From sequence record OU343167.1: a stretch of 64,000 nucleotides of DNA; one strand, given 5' to 3'. Below are positions 2,234 to 45,239 of the stretch, one piece after another. The notes under the pieces were generated by a model. That model searched no databases, was not told where the DNA came from, and was given only the letters and a program-made list of their open reading frames with translations. The first letter of the stretch is position 1. Every line of letters begins with the position of its first letter. The position numbers and the translations under genes were made by a program.

Positions 2234-4420
2234 TTACCGTCCATAGAATCCAAGTGAATTGAAACTACGTTCTTGTTGGAAACGAGAAGTACGGACACGT
2301 CTAACACGATCATCACGTACTTGTTTCAACATGGCATCGATACCAACACCGGTTGTTTCTTCCATGTTAATACTCTTCGAAAGATTACGAAGACGCATCT
2401 CAAGCTTGGTAATTACGAATGGATTTGTCTCACCTTTTAGCTGAGCAATCAAGTCCTCGAACTCACCTTTGTTTTGCTTCTCTTTATCTTCACGATATTT
2501 TTCCAGAGCAGTTAACTCTACGTCACGAGTAACAGCACGGGAGAAAATTGTTGCTGGATTAATACCGTAATAAGAAAGGTTCTGTCCACGAATACATACC
2601 CAGTGCGCCAACAGCATGGAAATTACCATGTCGTCGTGATTATCACGAGTGTGGTCAATTCGCCCATTCTTAATTGTCAAAGCAAGTAGTTCTGTAATCA
2701 GCGTCTTATCCGCCATTCTCCGGCTACCGTAATCCATTGAACTCGGTAATGCTTCAAGGAACAGGCTGTTACGAGAATACCGACCGGAACCTGAGGTGTT
2801 GAAACCAAAGTAACGTTTGAATCGATCATAGAACGAAGCAGGTCGTTGAGACAACGGAGTCTGAATATCACGGAACTCAGATTCTAGTACCGTGTGTTCA
2901 TCTACGATTCTATTAAAGATTCGGCGGAACGGATCTATCCCAGCTTTATGCAGTTGCATTACAACGAAGTCAATGAGAGCAGTGCCCATCGATTTACGTT
3001 CAGGTACCCATGTAATCGTCGGATAACGAATTAATAGATTACCGACGAATGCAGCAATAACAGGAACAGAGGTTTCATTATAACAACCAGCTGCTACTAC
3101 TTCGTGTGTCTCCACATCGAATATAACCATACCAGTGGCGTCATTACCTGATCCTAGAAGTTCACTTGGGTCCATGCCCATCATAAAGCGACCTTCAGCC
3201 ATTCTCTGGTCAACTTCATGTTTAGGGATATACCAGCGAATGGTGTAACCGTCTGGGGTGATCTCGGTCCAAATTGGTTCACGTTCAGATGATTTTAGTT
3301 GCTTCTTATGTTCGGGTGATAATGGAGAACCTTCACCACCAACAGTCCAGATATTGAAGAAGTCTCGGTCAGCGATCTCGCCAAAAGAACTAGACTCTTT
3401 AAGTTCCTGGAACAACCATTCATCTGTACGACCTAACTGCCTATGGTTAAAAGCTCCGTAGATGATAGGTTTCTGATCAGCCTTGGATCCTTTCTCCATT
3501 ACCAACACTGCCATACGTTGGTTCACTAGATCGAACATTGTTTCAGACCAGGTATGTCCACCTGTCATGAACTTGTAAGCAAATGCTCCATCGCGAGTGG
3601 TAATGTTGCCAGCAGTTGTTGTAAAGATGTTTCCGTATGGTTGACCTTGACGCTTGGCTTCGGCACGGGCGGCTGAACCAGAGGCAAGGGCTACAGGAAG
3701 AGAGATCTCAATCAAGTTAATATACGCAAATTCGTCGAACTGCATGATAGGTACTGTAAGACCACGACCAAGTTTGTCGGCAGCAATCTTATCGTTACGA
3801 CCAACTGCGGTCTTATAACGGTTACCTAAACGAATACACGTCATCAGCTCGTTATTGTCCACGTCATTTGGATTAGCCCAGTGAATGTAATCAGGTAATA
3901 GATCTCGCATTACCTTTAGACGTTCAATGTTCGCTGTTCGAAGTTTATTATCTTTAGTGATCAGGTTGATCGTGGTGTTCTCACCCCAGATATACATCAT
4001 ACCCGTCATCAAGATGTCAGTTGAAACCGATTTACCAGTCTGTCGTGGTTGTAACAGACCAAAGTCTAAGTGGTTAAAGAAGCACCAGAAAAGTGCAATG
4101 TTACCACGGTTAGCGCGGAAAGGGTTTGGGACGTTACCAGATGTCGCTGGGACACGGGCAACTTCACGGAAGTAATACCATGGATTGTATTTACACTCCA
4201 AGGCAATCTTCATTTTTGTAGCATCGTCTAGATCTGGATCATAGGGATCTACTCCCTGAAGATCAGGCTGGAGTAATGCTAAAATGAATTTCCAGTTTGC
4301 TATTTTAAGCTCATCTCTATAAAGAGCTGCTAATTTTAAGAATGTTTTATTTGACGTTTTTGTATCCACTATTGCTGTTGGGAACTTCTCCCAATCATCG
4401 CGGAATAAAATAAGTTCCAT
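2234..4420 (-). CDS. terL: Terminase large subunit (phiKZ gp25-like)
   Basis: 728 aa. Walker A PRQTGKS, Walker B IMQFDEFA, nuclease motifs GMDPS and HDDMV. Confidence 0.93.
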   Translation of the reverse strand: MELILFRDDWEKFPTAIVDTKTSNKTFLKLAALYRDELKIANWKFILALLQPDLQGVDPYDPDLDDATKMKIALECKYNPWYYFREVARVPATSGNVPNPFRANRGNIALFWCFFNHLDFGLLQPRQTGKSVSTDILMTGMMYIWGENTTINLITKDNKLRTANIERLKVMRDLLPDYIHWANPNDVDNNELMTCIRLGNRYKTAVGRNDKIAADKLGRGLTVPIMQFDEFAYINLIEISLPVALASGSAARAEAKRQGQPYGNIFTTTAGNITTRDGAFAYKFMTGGHTWSETMFDLVNQRMAVLVMEKGSKADQKPIIYGAFNHRQLGRTDEWLFQELKESSSFGEIADRDFFNIWTVGGEGSPLSPEHKKQLKSSEREPIWTEITPDGYTIRWYIPKHEVDQRMAEGRFMMGMDPSELLGSGNDATGMVIFDVETHEVVAAGCYNETSVPVIAAFVGNLLIRYPTITWVPERKSMGTALIDFVVMQLHKAGIDPFRRIFNRIVDEHTVLESEFRDIQTPLSQRPASFYDRFKRYFGFNTSGSGRYSRNSLFLEALPSSMDYGSRRMADKTLITELLALTIKNGRIDHTRDNHDDMVISMLLAHWVCIRGQNLSYYGINPATIFSRAVTRDVELTALEKYREDKEKQNKGEFEDLIAQLKGETNPFVITKLEMRLRNLSKSINMEETTGVGIDAMLKQVRDDRVRRVRTSRFQQERSFNSLGFYGR

Positions 4421-4469
4421 GACCGTTTCCTTAAAGAAACAAAAGGTTCATACCTTTAGGGTTAATTTA

Positions 4470-4506
4470 CGACATAAAGCTTCCCCCGAAGGGAAAGCTT
4501 CTGTAT
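4470..4506 (-). terminator. Intrinsic terminator
   Basis: CGACATAAAGCTTCCCC-cgaa-GGGAAAGCTT directly 3' of the minus-strand gene 4507..5157. Confidence 0.75.
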
Positions 4507-5157
4507 CTAGATTAACTCTAGTACTGGGCGCCAACCATAACCTACGTTAGGTTGAGATGGTGCGTTCTGCCCCCACCCTGTTACGCCATTAGGTCCACCA
4601 CGTAAGACTTTGAACCTAGGAGACCCAGTGTTACCATTAGTGGGTGTCCATGTCCAAATACCGAGGTTACTTGGATGTACAAATCCAAGATCCTCATTAC
4701 TTAAATTTTCCCAGAATGTTCCAGTTGGATCATTCGCGGATACACGGTACATCAGCTGACCCCACTCCGAGTTGGCTGGGGAACCACTTGCACCGCCTGA
4801 CAGATAAGATATCTTACAATCAATATCTTTTACTTTAGTTGAATTAGTATTGAAGTTATTAATGGCCAAAACTAATTGATCAAAGGACATTGAATGACGG
4901 ATAGTCTTTGTAGAGACTAAGAGTCGTCTGTCATTTAAAGAGAACATTAACCAATCTACATCTGTTTGATCTGGCATTCGCGTTCCATACGGATTACCAG
5001 AAAAACCGTGTACATCGTTCATTTGTTCAGCGCCAATGAAATCGGCAGCTGTAACTGTACCAAAATAACCTAGTGTCGAATCACCGGCTATCAGTTCAGT
5101 AGGTAAAACACTTGGTTTAGCTCTTTTAGAGTTGACCGATAGTAAAATTTCAATCAT
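4507..5157 (-). CDS. Putative virion structural protein (phiKZ-type paralog family)
   Basis: 216 aa. The LIAGDSTLGYFG.V and GWRPVLELI motifs are typical of phiKZ-like virion paralogs. Lies in the late block. Confidence 0.6.
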   Translation of the reverse strand: MIEILLSVNSKRAKPSVLPTELIAGDSTLGYFGTVTAADFIGAEQMNDVHGFSGNPYGTRMPDQTDVDWLMFSLNDRRLLVSTKTIRHSMSFDQLVLAINNFNTNSTKVKDIDCKISYLSGGASGSPANSEWGQLMYRVSANDPTGTFWENLSNEDLGFVHPSNLGIWTWTPTNGNTGSPRFKVLRGGPNGVTGWGQNAPSQPNVGYGWRPVLELI

Positions 5158-21063: not shown

Positions 21064-21093
21064 GGCATAAAGCCCTCTCCTTCGGGAGAGGGT
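21064..21093 (+). terminator. Intrinsic terminator
   Basis: GGCATAAAGCCCTCTCC-ttcg-GGAGAGGGTT. Confidence 0.8.
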
Positions 21094-21094
21094 T

Positions 21095-21385
21095 ATTCCA
21101 CTTTATTTTTTTTTCGCGGGGCCGGCCGTGCATAAGTAACTTGTTGTTAAAGAATAGATATCTTTAATAAAGAGTATTTTCCTTATTAAATGCTTTTTCT
21201 TTAAAAGAAATTTTATATAAATAGTAATTATATGTGGGGGGGACCCTTTGGGGGGGTCCCATATATAATTTCCTTATTCTTTAGTACGGGGGTAGGGAAA
21301 CAAAAACGACTATGTCGCAAAACTTGGAAGAGGGTGTCGTGGGGCTACAAAGCCCCATCCACCCAGTAGTAAAAATTATTTCAAA
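21095..21385. other. Non-coding AT-rich, palindrome-rich region
   Basis: 21141-21230 has only 14 G/C in 90 nt. Inverted repeat 21226-21238/21258-21270 around two G7 runs. Confidence 0.6.
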
Positions 21386-21386
21386 T

Positions 21387-21404
21387 CTATATTACCTAGT
21401 TGAA
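21387..21404 (+). promoter_or_regulatory. Early promoter CTATATTAC-N5-TGAA
   Basis: Exact motif upstream of ORF 21436. Confidence 0.75.
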
Positions 21405-21435
21405 TATTAACTCGTAAAACTGGAAAAAACCGAAA

Positions 21436-21657
21436 ATGAAAACATTGATCCCTGATTCTTTGTTCTTGGTTAACAACGACGAAGATGTCCATGAGTTGAT
21501 CAAACAGATGTACATTAAGTTCAAAGTCGACATGGTCTCCCCTAAGACGATTCTCTGTTCTTATCCGTCAGTGATAATGGCAACGGTTAGTAAAGAGTAT
21601 CAATCTCCAACGACCCTGATTATTCGTGTGGTACCCATTTCTGAAATTCTAACCTGA
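21436..21657 (+). CDS. Hypothetical protein (73 aa)
   Basis: First ORF after the promoter. Confidence 0.65.
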   Translation: MKTLIPDSLFLVNNDEDVHELIKQMYIKFKVDMVSPKTILCSYPSVIMATVSKEYQSPTTLIIRVVPISEILT

Positions 21658-31065: not shown

Positions 31066-31432
31066 GACGATATTCGTGAGGCTATCCATGGATGTTCTTT
31101 ATGGACCTCGTAGTCGGCAAATAGAAGCATGGGCAGATTTGGTTGGCTTCACGGTATCCGATATCAACTCATTAGCTATATTGATGGCTGAGGCTGATAT
31201 AGGTCACGGAACTGATCTCGATGACGATGCAATTATCACTGAAGTTTTTATGGATTCAGATATTGGTAAATGTATCGTTAGGACAATCCGACGACAAATA
31301 AAAGAGATAATATCATACCTTCCAACCGATACCATTGAACTTCGTTACTTAAGAACTTATGGAGATGCAGTGTATGTTATCGCCACCCGCGTCCCTAGTC
31401 TTCTCAATGGACCTGGGAATATTCTTCCCTAA
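31058..31432 (+). CDS. Hypothetical protein (124 aa)
   Basis: Overlapping operon gene with a GGGG SD-like element. Confidence 0.65.
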   Translation: MRETIFVRLSMDVLYGPRSRQIEAWADLVGFTVSDINSLAILMAEADIGHGTDLDDDAIITEVFMDSDIGKCIVRTIRRQIKEIISYLPTDTIELRYLRTYGDAVYVIATRVPSLLNGPGNILP

Positions 31433-31844
31433 TTACAACGAGCTTGAAAGATTACATCGAGTGATCTACAAGAAGAAAGAGTTCAAGGGCTACGGTCCAG
31501 GAGGAGTATGGGATGACGTTATAACTTGGGTACTTAGTGTATCTAAGGCGTTAAATGAAAATCCAGAGGTAATACCAAAGGATGTTACCATACCAAATTT
31601 TAGTTATAATGGTAAACTAGCGGAACGATATCAGGAGTTGTTTCTAGAGCACGCGATCATATTTCTGAAAGCATTACCACGAGGAATTGTTAGTATATTC
31701 CCGATAATGTTTAAAGGAACAGCTGCTAGATTTCTGCTAGAGTACTATGGGAGTAAGTGGCAACAGCATGCGATCGTTACTGGTTTTCGAATCGAAGACT
31801 TTAACCGACCAGTTGGTAAAGGAAGAAAACGCGCTTCTAGTTAA
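31407..31844 (+). CDS. Hypothetical protein (~145 aa)
   Basis: Operon gene; start uncertain. Confidence 0.6.
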   Translation: MDLGIFFPNYNELERLHRVIYKKKEFKGYGPGGVWDDVITWVLSVSKALNENPEVIPKDVTIPNFSYNGKLAERYQELFLEHAIIFLKALPRGIVSIFPIMFKGTAARFLLEYYGSKWQQHAIVTGFRIEDFNRPVGKGRKRASS

Positions 31845-40862: not shown

Positions 40863-41074
40863 GAAAAGAAATACTGGGGCTAGTTATTTAATACAGGAAA
40901 TGACCGTGAGGTCCTGACCTGCTATTTGAGCTATGCCCCAGATCACTGCATACTGAAGTTTGAATCTTAAGGAAACAAATATGTAATACAGTATGTGAAG
41001 ACTGAATGTCCTCAAATGACCTTGCTTTTATAGCGGGTCCTCCGGTCTATATTGCATTAAAAAAAATCTGAGAT

Positions 41075-41092
41075 CTATATAACAGTTTTGAA
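41075..41092 (+). promoter_or_regulatory. Chimallin promoter CTATATAAC-N5-TGAA
   Basis: Motif variant after an A9 tract, ~70 nt upstream of chmA. A second CTATATTGC lies at 41046. Confidence 0.65.
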
Positions 41093-41152
41093 TCCAATAC
41101 ACTGTTGGATCTCATTCTTGATCAAGAAACGTTACAAACATAGGAACAAATC

Positions 41153-43018
41153 ATGATTCGTGATACCGAAACTCAAAACACTCAAGCTCAAGCCAACAAC
41201 GCTCCGGCTCAAGCTACTCCGCGCGCACAACAGGAAGCTCCTCGTATGCAACAAGCTGCACCTCAAGCTCTGCAAGGCGGTATTTCCGGCCTGCCGAACA
41301 TGTTCAAACGTTCCGGTCGTACTGATGGCGGCGACGCCCGTGCGAGCGAAGCGCTGCAAGTAATGACCCGCGTTGGCAAAGATGCCATCGACCATCAAGA
41401 CCTGGAAAACGATTTCCAGATTCTGCGTTTCGACCGTGATGCCAACCGTGTTGGCTACTCCGCGCTGCTGATCGTCAAGCACGCTGCTGGTGGTAACGGT
41501 ATCATCGTAGTTCGTCCGCTGATCATGCCGAACCCGGCAATCACCCTGCCTCCGCGTCAGGTTACCATTCAGAACGGCATGAGCCACGATCGCTTCGATG
41601 TAGACGTCGAAGTACAAGACGTATTCACCGTTCAGTACTGGAACCGCATCTGCGAATTCGTTCGTCAGACCACCGGTCGTCCGAAGGCTGAAGTACACCC
41701 GGCTGGCCCGCTGCCGATCCCGGCTGAATTCGATCTGAAAGACGAAGTCCTGCTGAAAGACATTCTGATCCGTTCCGTCAACCTGTGTGACGACGTTCTG
41801 GCTAAGAAAGCTGGCGAGACTCCGTTCCAGATCGCAATGCTGCGCGGCCAAGATGAAACCCTGGCTGCCAAGATGGACTTCTCCGGTCGTCCGGTAATGG
41901 ACAGCGTCGGTAACCCGATCAAGTCCGATATCGTGATCAGCCTGAACCGTACCAAGAAACAAGGTCAGCAAGAGAACGAGTTCTACGAAGCAGACACCAT
42001 GCTGAACCAGGTGTCGGTACAAGTAACCCTGGAGTACACCCCCACTCCGCAAGCCCAGATGTTCGGTCAACAGACCCAACCGCTGCCGCCGTTCTCCCCG
42101 GCGATCCTGGTAACCGACATTCGTCAGGCCAACTGGATCAAGGCAAACACTCTGGAACTGTACCTCTTCGCTCTGTCGAACGCCTTCCGCGTAACCGCTG
42201 GCCAGGCTTGGGCTCGTAAGTTCCTGCCTCAAGTTGGTAAAGTTAAAGACCTGGGTGACATCGGTGCTCTGGGTTGGCTGTCCAACCTGGGTAAGAAGAT
42301 CGATACCAAGTCCGATACCTTCACCGATCAGAACTTCGCTGATCTGATGCTGAGCATGGTTCGTCCGAACCCGTCCTTCCTGATCGATCTGGATCGCATG
42401 GGCGACAACGCAGCACTGGACGTAATCTTCCTGGATGCCATGGGTGGCCCGAACCAACAGAAAGCTACTGCCGCGATCATTCGCGCTGTACAGAACCTGG
42501 TTGGTGGTGGCTTCGAGCGCTTCTTCGACTTCAACACTCAGCCGATCATTGCATCGACTGGCACTGAAGTGAACAAGGGCTACTACTGGGATGGCGACGA
42601 GAAACGTGACCGTCGTGACCTGGATGCACTGGGTGCACTGAACGCTGCTGAGGGCAACCAACAAGAGTGGATGTCCTGGTACGGTACTCAATGCAACCCG
42701 AACATCCATCCGGAACTGCGTAACAAGCAATCCAAGAATTACGACCGTGCGTTCCTGGGTGCTGTAACCTACACCACTCGTGCACATCGTGGTATCTTCA
42801 ACCCGAAGTTCATCGAGGGTCTGGATAAGGCGATTGCTGCTGCTGGTCTGACTGTAGCAATGGACAACGTTGCACAGGTCTTCGGTGCTCAGCGCTTCGT
42901 TGGCAACACCATGATCCAAGACTTCGCTGTCGGTTCTACCGCACAGGTTGTCAACGGCATGGGCGTTGGTGGCGGCTACCAGATGAACATGGTAGGTTCG
43001 GTTGGTACTCTGTACTAA
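41153..43018 (+). CDS. chmA: Chimallin, major phage nucleus shell protein
   Basis: 621 aa. MIRDT start, GGDARASEAL, ILRFDRD, QQENEFYE, GGGFERFFD, DEKRDRRDLD and C-terminal ...LY match 201phi2-1 gp105 as recalled. Confidence 0.96.
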   Translation: MIRDTETQNTQAQANNAPAQATPRAQQEAPRMQQAAPQALQGGISGLPNMFKRSGRTDGGDARASEALQVMTRVGKDAIDHQDLENDFQILRFDRDANRVGYSALLIVKHAAGGNGIIVVRPLIMPNPAITLPPRQVTIQNGMSHDRFDVDVEVQDVFTVQYWNRICEFVRQTTGRPKAEVHPAGPLPIPAEFDLKDEVLLKDILIRSVNLCDDVLAKKAGETPFQIAMLRGQDETLAAKMDFSGRPVMDSVGNPIKSDIVISLNRTKKQGQQENEFYEADTMLNQVSVQVTLEYTPTPQAQMFGQQTQPLPPFSPAILVTDIRQANWIKANTLELYLFALSNAFRVTAGQAWARKFLPQVGKVKDLGDIGALGWLSNLGKKIDTKSDTFTDQNFADLMLSMVRPNPSFLIDLDRMGDNAALDVIFLDAMGGPNQQKATAAIIRAVQNLVGGGFERFFDFNTQPIIASTGTEVNKGYYWDGDEKRDRRDLDALGALNAAEGNQQEWMSWYGTQCNPNIHPELRNKQSKNYDRAFLGAVTYTTRAHRGIFNPKFIEGLDKAIAAAGLTVAMDNVAQVFGAQRFVGNTMIQDFAVGSTAQVVNGMGVGGGYQMNMVGSVGTLY

Positions 43019-43340
43019 GAAACAACTCCCCCGGTTGATAGGGGTGTCAGAAGGCTGGCATCCCGATTCAAATACTGCGACCCTGGTTCACTTCGGTGAT
43101 AACGGTTAGGAGTAGGTTCCGCGAAGTAATCGACTAGTGGGCGTAAAGTCTAGGTCGACCTCTCGCTACACGGGTCGTGAGTGATCACTTAACCGAAAGG
43201 AGTTACTCTTGGGTAACGTGTGATCAAACAACGATGGATGGTAAAAGGTCCTAGTGCCAGAGTGCTACAGAGAAGAGCGGAGGTTAAGCTTTGTAGACGA
43301 CGCTAGGATCGTGCCAGGCTCCGTTGGTGGTCCATCGATA
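43019..43340 (+). ncRNA. Putative structured non-coding RNA / 3' element downstream of chmA
   Basis: At least 8 helices with G-U pairs, UUCG and GAAA tetraloops, and nested long-range pairings. No credible ORF. Bounded by the chmA stop and a strong terminator. Confidence 0.7.
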
Positions 43341-43341
43341 G

Positions 43342-43386
43342 TAGATAAGGCGGCTCCTTCGGGAGCCGCTTCTATCTCCTTTTTTT
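43342..43386 (+). terminator. Strong intrinsic terminator
   Basis: AGATAAGGCGGCTCC-ttcg-GGAGCCGCTTCTATCT followed by a T-tract. Confidence 0.85.
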
Positions 43387-43410
43387 GTCGAGACATAATA
43401 GGAAGTAGGT

Positions 43411-44670
43411 ATGGGTCTATATGCTCAGGTTGTCAATCATGACGAGATGCTCGCTAACCAAAGAGGTAAAGTAGTATTCGCTAACGACTTTAATACCAGC
43501 AATGCTGAACAAAAGGAGGAATTCCAACGTTATCTGTTCTCCCATTATCAGGATGCAGATGCGATCGAGAACTCAGCTTCGTGTGACTGTGAGCATATCA
43601 CAGAAGCATACAAGCTTGGGGTAATCTGCGATAACTGCGGTACACCAGTAGTAAGCACGAGCAACCGACCCATCGTCCCATCGATGTGGATTCGGGCACC
43701 GGAAGGGGTGGATCGTCTGGTGAGTCCCGAGTTGTGGATTATGCTTTCAGGTTATATGTCGATGAAAGAATTCGACTTCCTGGAGTATCTGACCAACACC
43801 CAGTATCAGTACGATTACGATACGATCAGTTCGAAGGAAACAAAACGGAAACTTGACAAGTTACTGGCTCGCCAGTTCCCGCGTGGACTGAACAACTTCG
43901 TTCAGAACTTCGATACGATCTTCCAGTTCTTGCTCGATAGCAGTATCATCAATACCAACAAAGGTGAGATGGCTGCATTCGTTAACCAGAATAAAGAACA
44001 TCTGTTCCCGAAGAACATTCCGATCCCAACTAAACTCTGCTTCGTTGTAGAGTCTACGACCTCGGGTGTTTACATCGATAAGCCGATCGGCGCAGCAATC
44101 GATGCGGTACTGACTATTAGTAGTATCGGTAGTTCGGCAATTCCGCTGAAACCAATCACTGTACAAAACCGTGTAGCTCGTGCACTGAAGCTTCTAGCTA
44201 TCTTCCACGAGAACTACGACAAACAACGAATTGCACAGAAACCCGGTTTGGTTCGTCGACATGTACTAGGTGGTCGTCTTAACCTGACTGCACGTGCAGT
44301 AATTACTTCTATCAGTGATCCGCATGATTACGATGAACTTCACATTCCGTGGGGTGTCGGTTGTCAGCTGTTGAAGTATCATCTGATCAACAAGCTCAAA
44401 CGCAAATTCCGTATGACGACTCGCCAAGCGAACTCGTTCATTTACGAGAACGTTCTGAAGTACAACGAAGTCATCGATCAACTGTTCAAAGAGATCATCG
44501 CGGAATCGAAGTATAAGGGTCTTCCTTGTGTATTCCACCGCAACCCGACTCTGCAACGTGGTTCGACTCAACAGTTCTTCATCACCGTTATCAAGAATGA
44601 CATTCGCGATAACTCGATCAGCATGTCGGTCCTCTGTCTTAAAGCTCCTAATGCGGATTTCGACGGAGAT
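43411..44670 (+). CDS. Non-virion RNA polymerase beta' N-terminal subunit, exon 1 (phiKZ gp55-like)
   Basis: Zn-binding CDC..CDNC, GGRLNLTARAVI, HRNPTL and catalytic NADFDGD ending at 44670 (420 codons). Confidence 0.93.
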
Positions 44671-45032
44671 TTTAATTGGTCTCCTAACCTTCTTAATTGC
44701 TGGAACCTCCTTAGAGCCTAACTACCAAAGCGGGGTCCGAAAGGACGAACGTAACGGTTTGAAAAGTGTTAGGATTGGACAATCAGCAGCGAAGCTTCTA
44801 CATATTACCGTGAGGTAAGATATGAAGAACGTTCAACGACTATCGAAACCGCTGCGAAAGCAGATAAGGGAGTAGAGTAGGATCAAGTGATCCGAAATAG
44901 AAGGCTTCCCCATAGGGAAGAAGATATAGTCTCACCATCTAGTGAAAGCTAGAGCAGTTACTTAATGTCGAGAGATATTAAGTGGACGGTACAGCTGCGA
45001 CATGTCGCTAACGAAGCTGTACGAAGAATGTG
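44671..45032 (+). mobile_element. Group I intron (subgroup IA2-like), 362 nt, no homing endonuclease
   Basis: P1: exon GGAGAU pairs with intron GUCUCC, with U-G at the splice site. P AATTGCTGGAA 44695, Q AATCAGCAG 44781, R GTTCAACGACTA 44831, S AAGATATAGTCT 44921. P3 CCTTCT/AGAAGG, P7.1/P7.2, P8, P9-P9.2, terminal omega-G at 45032. Confidence 0.93.
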
Positions 45033-45239
45033 CAACTTAACTTAACGTTGATGCCCGATAACTATCTGGCTGATGCAACTGAACGAATCGCTCCGCATAC
45101 TTGGGTACTGAGTCCTGATGATCCGCACGAGATCTCGGGTAACTTGGAACTACAAGGTCCGGTAGTAGAGACCATCATCAACTATGCTCACGAGGACTAT
45201 CTTCCGTCCTTGGAAGAATGGTTGGCGAAAGCAGCTTAA
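45033..45239 (+). CDS. nvRNAP beta' N-terminal subunit, exon 2 (phiKZ gp56.1-like)
   Basis: Splicing restores in-frame NADFDGD|QLNLTLM; spliced product is 488 aa. Confidence 0.9.
   Translation, partial: QLNLTLMPDNYLADATERIAPHTWVLSPDDPHEISGNLELQGPVVETIINYAHEDYLPSLEEWLAKAA

Follow-up and report, generated by a model that had tools for sequence, protein, structure and literature searches.

The chmA-Polymerase Locus

The stretch of DNA analyzed here (64,000 nucleotides of sequence record OU343167.1; hereinafter, the window) comes from a jumbo phage of the Pawinskivirus group (phiLBG22/PA1C/PS119XW), the members of which have genomes of ~302 kb. The sequence of the window coincides with that of vB_PaeM_phiLBG22 and shares 99-100% identity with PA1C, PS119XW, BRkr and HHBS36_1. 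The locus of interest includes, on the + strand, the chimallin (nuclear shell protein) gene chmA (41153..43018) and, downstream of it, the gene for the N-terminal beta' subunit of the non-virion RNA polymerase (nvRNAP). Between these two genes lies the element that is the subject of this work, a conserved multi-domain + strand RNA of ~320 nt that extends from ~12 nt past the chmA stop codon to a predicted intrinsic terminator and represents a previously uncatalogued structured RNA family.

The 621 aa ChmA protein matches the Pfam family PF25677 (Chimallin_Phikzvirus) over its full length with a score of 1101 bits and is 100% identical to the nuclear shell protein of PS119XW. The downstream gene, which lies outside the RNA, contains the Pfam domain RNA_pol_Rpb1_2; its open reading frame (ORF) spans positions 43411-44721, within which the first exon (43411..44670, + strand) has an estimated end at ~44670 (see below). 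The order chmA-polymerase is common to phiKZ, PhiPA3, 201phi2-1, Phabio, Psa21, D6, Noxifer, RAY, Goslar, LucasX and RSL2. The gap between the two genes is 391 nt long, the longest among the 67 gaps (median 42 nt) in 50 kb of the annotated twin phage PS119XW, in agreement with the first-pass annotation of this DNA, which had drawn attention to ~320 non-coding nucleotides in a genome with mostly shorter intergenic regions. The counterpart in phiKZ is the unannotated gap between PHIKZ054 and PHIKZ055 (NC_004629, 47529-47922). The segment 43019-43340 is non-coding: the small ORFs that can be found in the gap are not shared with phiKZ, in which these frames are closed, and the sequences of the two phage groups differ by insertions and deletions of 1-3 nt.

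The predicted terminator (43344..43386, + strand) consists of a GAUA/UAUC extension and a 9-bp G+C-rich stem (43349-57/43362-70) with a UUCG loop, followed by UCC and a run of seven U, and is kept in all relatives, with wobble changes only. A strict terminator scan omits it, owing to an internal loop in the stem and to a U-run that begins 3 nt past the extended stem. In a simple sequence scan of the + strand from the chmA stop codon to 43340, neither a promoter-like nor a terminator-like site was detected, which bears out the earlier placement of the element between chmA and its terminator with no terminator in between, and co-transcription with chmA is accordingly the simplest reading. The same kind of scan yielded no promoter-like site between the terminator and the ribosome-binding site of the polymerase gene, so that this gene's expression probably depends on read-through. 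Three Shine-Dalgarno-like motifs occur inside the element (AGGAG at 43109-13, AGGAG at 43198-202 and GGAGG at 43280-84), the third of which is located in the invariant apical loop of the candidate pseudoknot described in the next section.

Architecture of the RNA Element

The + strand of 43019-43340 folds with a predicted energy of -116.5 kcal/mol (z = -2.9; 1 of 100 dinucleotide shuffles is equally good), whereas the z-score of the - strand is -0.5. The structural model holds many G-U pairs and, for this reason, the asymmetry between the strands points to an RNA rather than a DNA element, in line with the + strand structured RNA proposed in the first-pass annotation. When the phiKZ homologue is folded alone, the minimum-energy structure contains the same junctions. 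Thermodynamic stability alone does not single out the chmA gap, so that the argument is carried by the comparative evidence. Among the other gaps of the window, 31433-31767 (z = -3.3, + strand only) is conserved solely within Pawinskivirus, and 40863-41152 has z-scores of -4.7 and -3.3 on the two strands.

The comparative model includes a linker and three domains, all on the + strand. The linker that follows the chmA stop codon and precedes the first helix (43019..43029) is short and has diverged between the window and phiKZ groups in the alignments. Domain 1 (43030..43174) is a four-way junction with a closing helix of 4-5 bp (43030-33/43171-74) and three arms of 13-17 bp: arm 1 is formed by 43035-38/43068-71 and 43041-49/43056-64; arm 2 by 43073-82/43104-14, with an apical UCAC-UUCG-GUGA hairpin (43088-99); and arm 3 by 43121-26/43160-66, 43130-35/43153-58 and 43138-42/43148-52. 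Two joining strands of this domain, GGUUCC (43115-20) and UACA (43167-70), are invariant. Domain 2, or M3 (43183..43225), is a three-way junction with the outer helix GAUCAC/GUGAUC (43183-88/43220-25), a UUAA joining strand and two hairpins, the mini-hairpin CC-GAAA-GG (43193-200) and GUUACU/GGUAAC (43202-07/43212-17). Domain 3, or M4 (43232..43337), consists of nested helices (43232-38/43331-37, 43239-42/43313-16, 43247-49/43308-10 together with 43251-56/43301-06, and 43263-72/43289-99) with an invariant apical loop, AAGAGCGGAGGUUAAG.

Several additional contacts are compatible with the sequences. A candidate H-type pseudoknot (43277..43324, + strand) would join the Domain 3 loop GCGGAG (43277-82) to CUCCGU (43319-24). 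In the near relatives, 6 of the 6 pairs form and 6 of the 6 are invariant, so that the pseudoknot is neither supported nor contradicted; the partner sequences are missing in PhiPA3. The same holds for the long-range contacts of UUAACC that had been proposed earlier, for which all of the bases involved are invariant in the near relatives and the partners are missing in PhiPA3. A competing nested fold of the 3' half (43232-38/43320-26 with 43183-88/43327-32) is 100% compatible with the sequences as well, and the two folds are mutually exclusive.

Covariation in the Relatives

To assess the conservation of the fold, 9-10 distinct sequences were aligned in two halves, pairs were counted, and the counts were compared with a control in which the pairing partners were slid by 1-3 columns. 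In the model, 99-100% of the cells are paired compared to 29-47% with slid partners, and none of the shuffles matches the observed score, in what is effectively a comparison of two clades plus PhiPA3 (2-3 lineages), with a shuffle control that ignores relatedness. Columns that vary make up 13% of the paired but 35% of the unpaired positions, and 16 of the 18 varying pairs remain paired in every sequence, the two exceptions being single sequences. Seven pairs overall have changed on both sides in the comparison with the phiKZ group.

In the 5' half, which corresponds to Domain 1, 99.4% of the cells are paired, compared to 29-44% and at most one both-side change in the slid controls. The closing helix, the base of arm 3 and both helices of arm 1 each have one of the four both-side changes, which are C-G to U-A at 43031/43173, 43048/43057 and 43122/43165 and U-A to A-U at 43036/43070. 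In the 3' half, all cells are paired in 10 sequences, with three both-side changes, G-C to A-U at 43233/43336, A-U to G-C at 43205/43214 (in HPP-Temi) and U-A to G-C at 43249/43308, and seven changes of the wobble type. Compensating substitutions thus exceed those in the controls, as expected of a conserved structured RNA. The hairpin loops, the 5' linker and the spacer that precedes the terminator have strongly diverged between the two groups, whereas the stems and certain joining strands have not; hence the invariant parts reflect constraint and not recent origin alone. Taken together, these substitution patterns indicate that the fold of the element is subject to purifying selection.

Most of the helices predicted in the first-pass annotation withstand this comparison. 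The helices 43041-49/43056-64, 43088-91/43096-99, 43130-35/43153-58 (extended by 43138-42/43148-52), 43202-07/43212-17, 43232-38/43331-37, 43247-56/43301-10 and 43265-72/43289-96 are fully paired in 9-10 relatives, and several of them show both-side changes. The helix 43182-88/43220-26 is a special case: its core, 43183-88/43220-25, is invariant and perfectly paired in 10 of the 10 phiKZ group and Pawinskivirus sequences, so that the evidence for this helix consists entirely of the respelled equivalents in PhiPA3, Phabio and 201phi2-1 that are described below. By contrast, the helix 43077-83/43172-78, initially proposed to enclose the UCAC-UUCG-GUGA hairpin and the helix 43130-37/43150-58, had to be abandoned: it is paired in 68% of the cells and is broken throughout the phiKZ group. 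The comparative data favor instead the closing helix 43030-33/43171-74 and the local arm 43073-82/43104-14.

Homologues and Respelled Relatives

A blastn search detected the element in 57 Pseudomonas phage records that include the Pawinskivirus group (95-100% identity) and the whole of the phiKZ group, in which 307 of 327 nt aligned at 86-88% identity; the full window-type element was seen in this search only in phages of P. aeruginosa. The conservation of the gap does not follow that of the flanking genes. Identity between the window and phiKZ is 84% in the gap, compared to 56% in the last 600 nt of chmA and 61% in the first 600 nt of the polymerase gene (48% and 67% for the ChmA and polymerase (gp55) proteins, respectively). 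For PhiPA3, the corresponding values are 61% for the gap, 71% and 74% for the two flanks, and 66% and 85% for ChmA and the polymerase (gp054). Thus, PhiPA3 is closer to the window on both flanks, yet its element is more distant than that of phiKZ, which means that horizontal exchange of the element has taken place.

Beyond the near relatives, two covariance models, denoted R1 and R2, yielded only a strong match in PhiPA3 and a weak match in Phabio. The PhiPA3 gap is 515 nt long and is matched by the 5'-half model R2 with 47 bits (E = 7e-12). Arm 1 of Domain 1 is respelled in PhiPA3 as GGGGUGUACG/CGUACAUCCC compared to GGGGUGUCAG/CUGGCAUCCC in the window; arm 2 differs in sequence and retains the topology, with a CUC-GAAA-GAG tip; arm 3 has the base GUGGUAG/CUAUCAC and ~150 additional nucleotides; and the joining strands UAGGUUCCG and CUACACG are retained. 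The three-way junction is also recognizable in PhiPA3, where the outer helix is GAACCAC/GUGGUUC, the UUAA strand is retained, and the outer helix and one hairpin are recovered. The 3' domain of PhiPA3 is different and shares only GAUGGUAAAA with Domain 3 of the window.

The most widely conserved part of the element is the three-way junction, in which a strand reading UUAA or UUUAU and two hairpins are combined with an outer helix. It constitutes the minimum-energy fold of the sequence downstream of chmA in Phabio (GAUCGC/GUGGUC) and in 201phi2-1 (ACCGC/GUGGU, with the hairpins CUCGA/UCGAG and AGUGUCAU/GUGACACU), and likewise in phiKZ and HPP-Temi. Altogether, this junction is present after chmA in phages of five genera that infect three Pseudomonas host species.

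Wider searches did not extend this range. No second copy of the element was found by the R1 and R2 models within the 64-kb window, and neither the element nor a host or prophage copy was detected in 185,579 bacterial and archaeal genomes. In viral contigs, two 14-base patterns gave chance matches only and were discarded; longer patterns retrieved from this collection (IMG/VR) only the known isolates PA7, PhiPA3 and Psa21. A scan of a metagenome collection gave a single chance match located inside a sulfate adenylyltransferase gene. The search of the viral contigs with the chimallin protein added only PhiPA3, 201phi2-1 and one uncultured relative.

Two other conserved segments were noticed in the course of these comparisons. 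The phages 201phi2-1 and Viktualia and the uncultured relative share a hairpin downstream of chmA (positions 2503-2700, 3286-3520 and ~4400-4560 of the locus sequences L003, L013 and L012, respectively). The stem of this hairpin covaries (GUGGACACC/GGUGUUCAC; ACGUAGGUACC/GGUACUUACGU; CCACAUCU/AGAUGUGG), and its loop, CCUAAAUACUGGNUAAA, is conserved and resembles UCAAAUACUGCG at positions 43067-78 of the window. The second segment, at 21073-21443 of the window (core ~21140-21290), follows the gene in the position of phiKZ PHIKZ037 and contains a terminator, an A+T-rich stretch and a hairpin, AUAUGUGGGGGGGACCC-UUU-GGGGGGGUCCCAUAUAU. In phiKZ (31131-31248, between PHIKZ037 and 038) and Psa21, ~120-160 nt of this segment are conserved at 81% identity; the segment resembles a conserved promoter that carries a 5' hairpin more than it does an RNA of the chmA type.

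Patchy Distribution and Exchange of Modules

The first-pass annotation had suggested a search for the structure in the chmA-polymerase gaps of other Chimalliviridae, and the outcome was mixed: the structure is kept in the Pseudomonas lineages described above, whereas the element is absent from D6, Noxifer, RAY, Goslar and RSL2. In these phages, there is only a terminator-sized gap (87 nt in D6, 84 nt in Noxifer, 105 nt in RAY, 92 nt in Goslar and 93 nt in RSL2), and in LucasX, the terminator is located 25-70 nt past chmA. The difference between presence and absence is best seen in two phages of P. syringae, Psa21 and D6, the flanks of which are 82-86% identical: in the former, a structured RNA of ~350 nt separates the chmA stop codon from the terminator, whereas the latter, with a nearly identical terminator, lacks it (sequence comparison of L014 3295-3729, from Psa21, with L015 3274-3360, from D6).

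A replacement rather than a loss is observed in the Pawinskivirus phiHQ, the flanks of which share 99% identity with the window. In this phage, the 5' half of the element is swapped for ~300 nt homologous to the Psa21 insert, and the three-way junction and the 3' domain are intact. The swapped segment represents a second uncatalogued RNA module (L009 720-1040 in phiHQ; L014 3295-3640 in Psa21; L258 2501-2588 in the Ralstonia phage RP13), for which no Rfam match and no occurrence in the bacterial genomes scanned were found. RP13 is not among the phages with chimallin matches. The module also has helices that show compensating changes (AGGUC/GACCU vs UAGUC/GACUA; CCCAG/CUGGG, CUCGA/UCGAG and CCAGA/UCUGG), and its loop CUUACGGUGA can pair with the downstream AAACCGUAU, which might constitute another pseudoknot.

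From these comparisons, the element comes across as a lineage-restricted, horizontally exchanged accessory part and not as a component of the core phage-nucleus machinery. That many nucleus-forming phages do without the element speaks against its being essential for shell assembly or for a universal mRNA export step, and a part in nucleus construction common to all such phages is unlikely.

Relationship to Known RNA Families and Rejected Identities

The permissive scan of 42800-43600 with the 4227 models of Rfam 15 produced only chance-level matches (best E = 0.35), with overlaps to the element at its terminator end, where the terminator parts of unrelated sRNA models align weakly to 43344-43386. 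Likewise, in seven relatives, the homologous gaps had no Rfam match at E up to 1. The initial statement that the RNA could not be matched to tRNA, tmRNA or group I or II cores agrees with these scans and with the search for tRNA and tmRNA genes using ARAGORN, which found none in the window. Group I and II introns were rejected given that no signal appears in the element at E up to 10 and that chmA is complete without splicing.

The scan of the whole window at the Rfam gathering score returned a single hit, a group I intron (RF00028) at 44649-44954, which serves as a positive control: it scores 75.7 bits against a gathering score of 50, and the exons join. This unannotated intron (~44671-45034), which contains no ORF, splits the nvRNAP beta' N-terminal gene just past the catalytic NADFDGD motif. 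The second exon (~45035-45238) encodes QLNLTLMPDNYLADATERIAP..., similar to the C-terminus of the uninterrupted 488-aa gp054 of PhiPA3. In PS119XW, the two exons are annotated as separate genes, gp055 (436 aa) and gp056; in HPP-Temi, HHBS36_1 and phiHQ, the polymerase gene is annotated with 1467 nt (488 aa), the length of the PhiPA3 gene, which suggests that the intron is absent.

Two further identities were considered and rejected. Recoding by read-through of the stop codon is incompatible with phiKZ, where chmA ends in tandem stop codons, UAA UAG. An RsmA sponge is not indicated by the five GGA motifs in 320 nt, the number expected by chance, only one of which is in a loop.

Possible Functions of the Element

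The reading that we favor, tentatively and at somewhat less than even confidence, is that the element is a cis-acting 3'-end module that protects and insulates the chmA message and offers invariant junctions to a specific RNA-binding protein. Under this proposal, the element would be transcribed from the chmA promoters as the 3' untranslated region (UTR) of the very abundant chmA mRNA and, together with the terminator hairpin, would form a compact unit that shields the message against 3'-to-5' decay and sets it apart from the polymerase gene downstream, itself probably reached by read-through. Transcription from the chmA promoters is in line with the phiKZ dRNA-seq data, in which early and middle start sites lie upstream of PHIKZ054. 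The invariant loops and joining strands, and in particular the UUAA three-way junction, could dock a specific phage or host RNA-binding protein that would tune how stable the chmA mRNA is, how well it is translated or where it is placed.

Protective 3' stem-loops are well known and include terminator hairpins, REP-type intercistronic stabilizers and the RNase III-processed 3' hairpins of T7 early mRNAs. Similarly to the chmA element, such structures are located at the 3' end of an abundant early mRNA, upstream of a gene expressed at a lower level, and have a stable, G+C-rich fold; however, they are single hairpins with little sequence constraint, in contrast to the multi-helix junctions, invariant loops and possible pseudoknot of the chmA element. 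Junctions and pseudoknots are also found in the 3' UTR domains of RNA viruses of eukaryotes (tRNA-like structures with upstream pseudoknots and exonuclease-resistant RNAs), which block 5'-to-3' decay or mimic tRNA and have roles in stability, translation and protein recruitment. There is, however, no homology between these domains and the chmA element, in which ARAGORN finds no tRNA-like gene.

Several observations weigh against the protective module. A plain stabilizer needs neither at least 15 helices nor invariant loops. The relatives that lack the element, D6, RAY, Goslar and RSL2, imply that chmA expression as such does not require it. The core of the phiHQ/Psa21 module is found also in the Ralstonia phage RP13, directly 5' of tRNA-Leu, which suggests a free-standing RNA. 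Furthermore, four other long gaps of the same genome also fold well (z -3 to -5), and with about three lineages compared, each compensating change is a single event.

The main rival, possible if doubtful, is that the element functions in trans, as a "moron" carried by the strongest early transcript: once cut from the chmA mRNA, this stable RNA would accumulate and, early in infection, bind or titrate a factor of the host, for instance an RNase, an RNA chaperone, a defense sensor or the ribosome. The accessory distribution (Psa21 vs D6 and the short gaps in RAY, Goslar, RSL2 and Noxifer), the module swap in phiHQ, the affinity of the element to phiKZ when both flanking genes are closest to PhiPA3, and the confinement of the full window-type element to P. 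aeruginosa phages all fit this possibility, and so do the invariant unpaired loops, which suggest specific recognition. The same applies to the position of the swapped-in module core in RP13, abutting the 5' end of tRNA-Leu, where RNase P would set it free. In this respect, the RP13 module is reminiscent of GOLLD and ROOL, ornate RNAs that often adjoin tRNAs. Like the chmA element, these are large, multi-domain, phage-carried RNAs with a patchy distribution. The chmA RNA differs from them in being smaller, being located inside an mRNA 3' UTR and lacking a match to any Rfam model.

Stable RNAs derived from 3' UTRs have been reported in phage infections, namely 3'UTR_PHIKZ298 of phiKZ and ncRNA1 and ncRNA2 of PAK_P3, which are structured, lie 3' of a coding gene, end at a terminator, possess no separate start site and are presumed to be released by processing (PMC8545117, PMC10914365). 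The chmA element shares with them the phage origin, the structure and the location between a gene and its terminator; however, these RNAs were found experimentally and are 90-210 nt long with two stem-loops, whereas the chmA element, known from covariation, is ~320 nt long with three junction domains. Against an RNA acting in trans, no target or partner can be named, and in the phiKZ dRNA-seq, Grad-seq and ONT-cappable-seq papers (main texts), there is no mention of an RNA downstream of PHIKZ054 or of a discrete species from this locus. Nor is such an RNA mentioned in the 201phi2-1 transcriptome, the antisense-oligomer and transposon papers, the 2026 jumbo-phage review, the viral structured-RNA catalogue or the ChmC eCLIP study, which describes peaks near start codons and makes no statement on the chmA 3' region. 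In addition, the three-way junction is always located after chmA in phages of the three Pseudomonas host species, which fits a role in cis.

An improbable alternative is a regulatory leader of the nvRNAP beta' gene, in which the fold would sense a factor and change the efficiency of the terminator at 43344-43386, thereby setting the ratio of ChmA to the polymerase. The probable dependence of the polymerase gene on read-through, inferred from the lack of a promoter-like site between the terminator and its ribosome-binding site, is compatible with such a mechanism, and the phiKZ transcriptome papers place PHIKZ054, with early and middle start sites upstream, in many transcription units and in a multi-gene operon (054-059 are described as one). 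A test for riboswitch or attenuator features showed that the two mutually exclusive folds of the 3' half are each compatible with all sequences and that pairing of GGCUCC (43317-22) with the terminator's 3' arm is possible. However, this sole candidate anti-terminator is 6 bp long against the 9-bp G+C-rich stem and is missing in PhiPA3 despite the same terminator; no riboswitch model matches; and the order chmA-terminator-polymerase occurs without the element in D6, Noxifer, RAY and Goslar.

Very improbable, in our estimate, is a selfish or decaying insert without a use, such as the remnant of an intron or a homing endonuclease cassette spread by recombination during co-infection. The presence-absence pattern and the module swapping would fit such an insert, as would the genuine group I intron 1.3 kb downstream and the homing endonuclease genes found at the chmA-polymerase locus in phiKZ and Goslar. 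The group I intron is also comparable to the chmA element: both are ORF-less, structured and 300-400 nt long, and both belong to a jumbo phage locus with homing elements; yet the chmA element has a different topology, no match to the intron core with the library that detects the true intron, and no gene that it interrupts, chmA being complete without splicing. Moreover, the compensating changes and the threefold lower variability of the stems show that the fold is under selection.

We give hardly any credence to a role at the DNA level (an origin, a packaging or a protein-binding site) or to small proteins, the 35-aa and 62-aa ORFs of some relatives, called by automated annotation in HPP-Temi and HHBS36_1, given the many G-U pairs and the z-score of the - strand, which point to RNA from the + strand, the frames closed in phiKZ and shifted by indels between the groups, and the fact that one of the small ORFs runs through the terminator.

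Implications

A rather speculative extension, which we consider unlikely as a whole, is that the chmA 3' UTR is a modular RNA cassette traded among jumbo phages that share hosts and expressed within minutes of the start of infection, being carried on the most abundant early transcript. Such a cassette might act as a decoy or inhibitor of host RNases or RNA-sensing defense, or as an address label by which a conserved phage protein receives the chmA mRNA, placing synthesis of the shell protein at the site of nucleus assembly; the shared recognition core would then be the UUAA three-way junction, with the flanking domains as host-specific add-ons.

The gene chmA yields the earliest and most abundant of the essential transcripts of phiKZ, the model phage for nucleus formation. 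A complex RNA under structural selection on this transcript offers a testable lead into the little-explored RNA biology of jumbo phages, be it mRNA stability, mRNA sorting or host manipulation. The presence of the element in phiKZ makes it accessible to the existing dRNA-seq, long-read and gradient-sedimentation data and to the antisense-oligomer toolkit. The patchy, mosaic distribution shows that co-infecting jumbo phages exchange non-coding RNA modules in the same manner as accessory genes.

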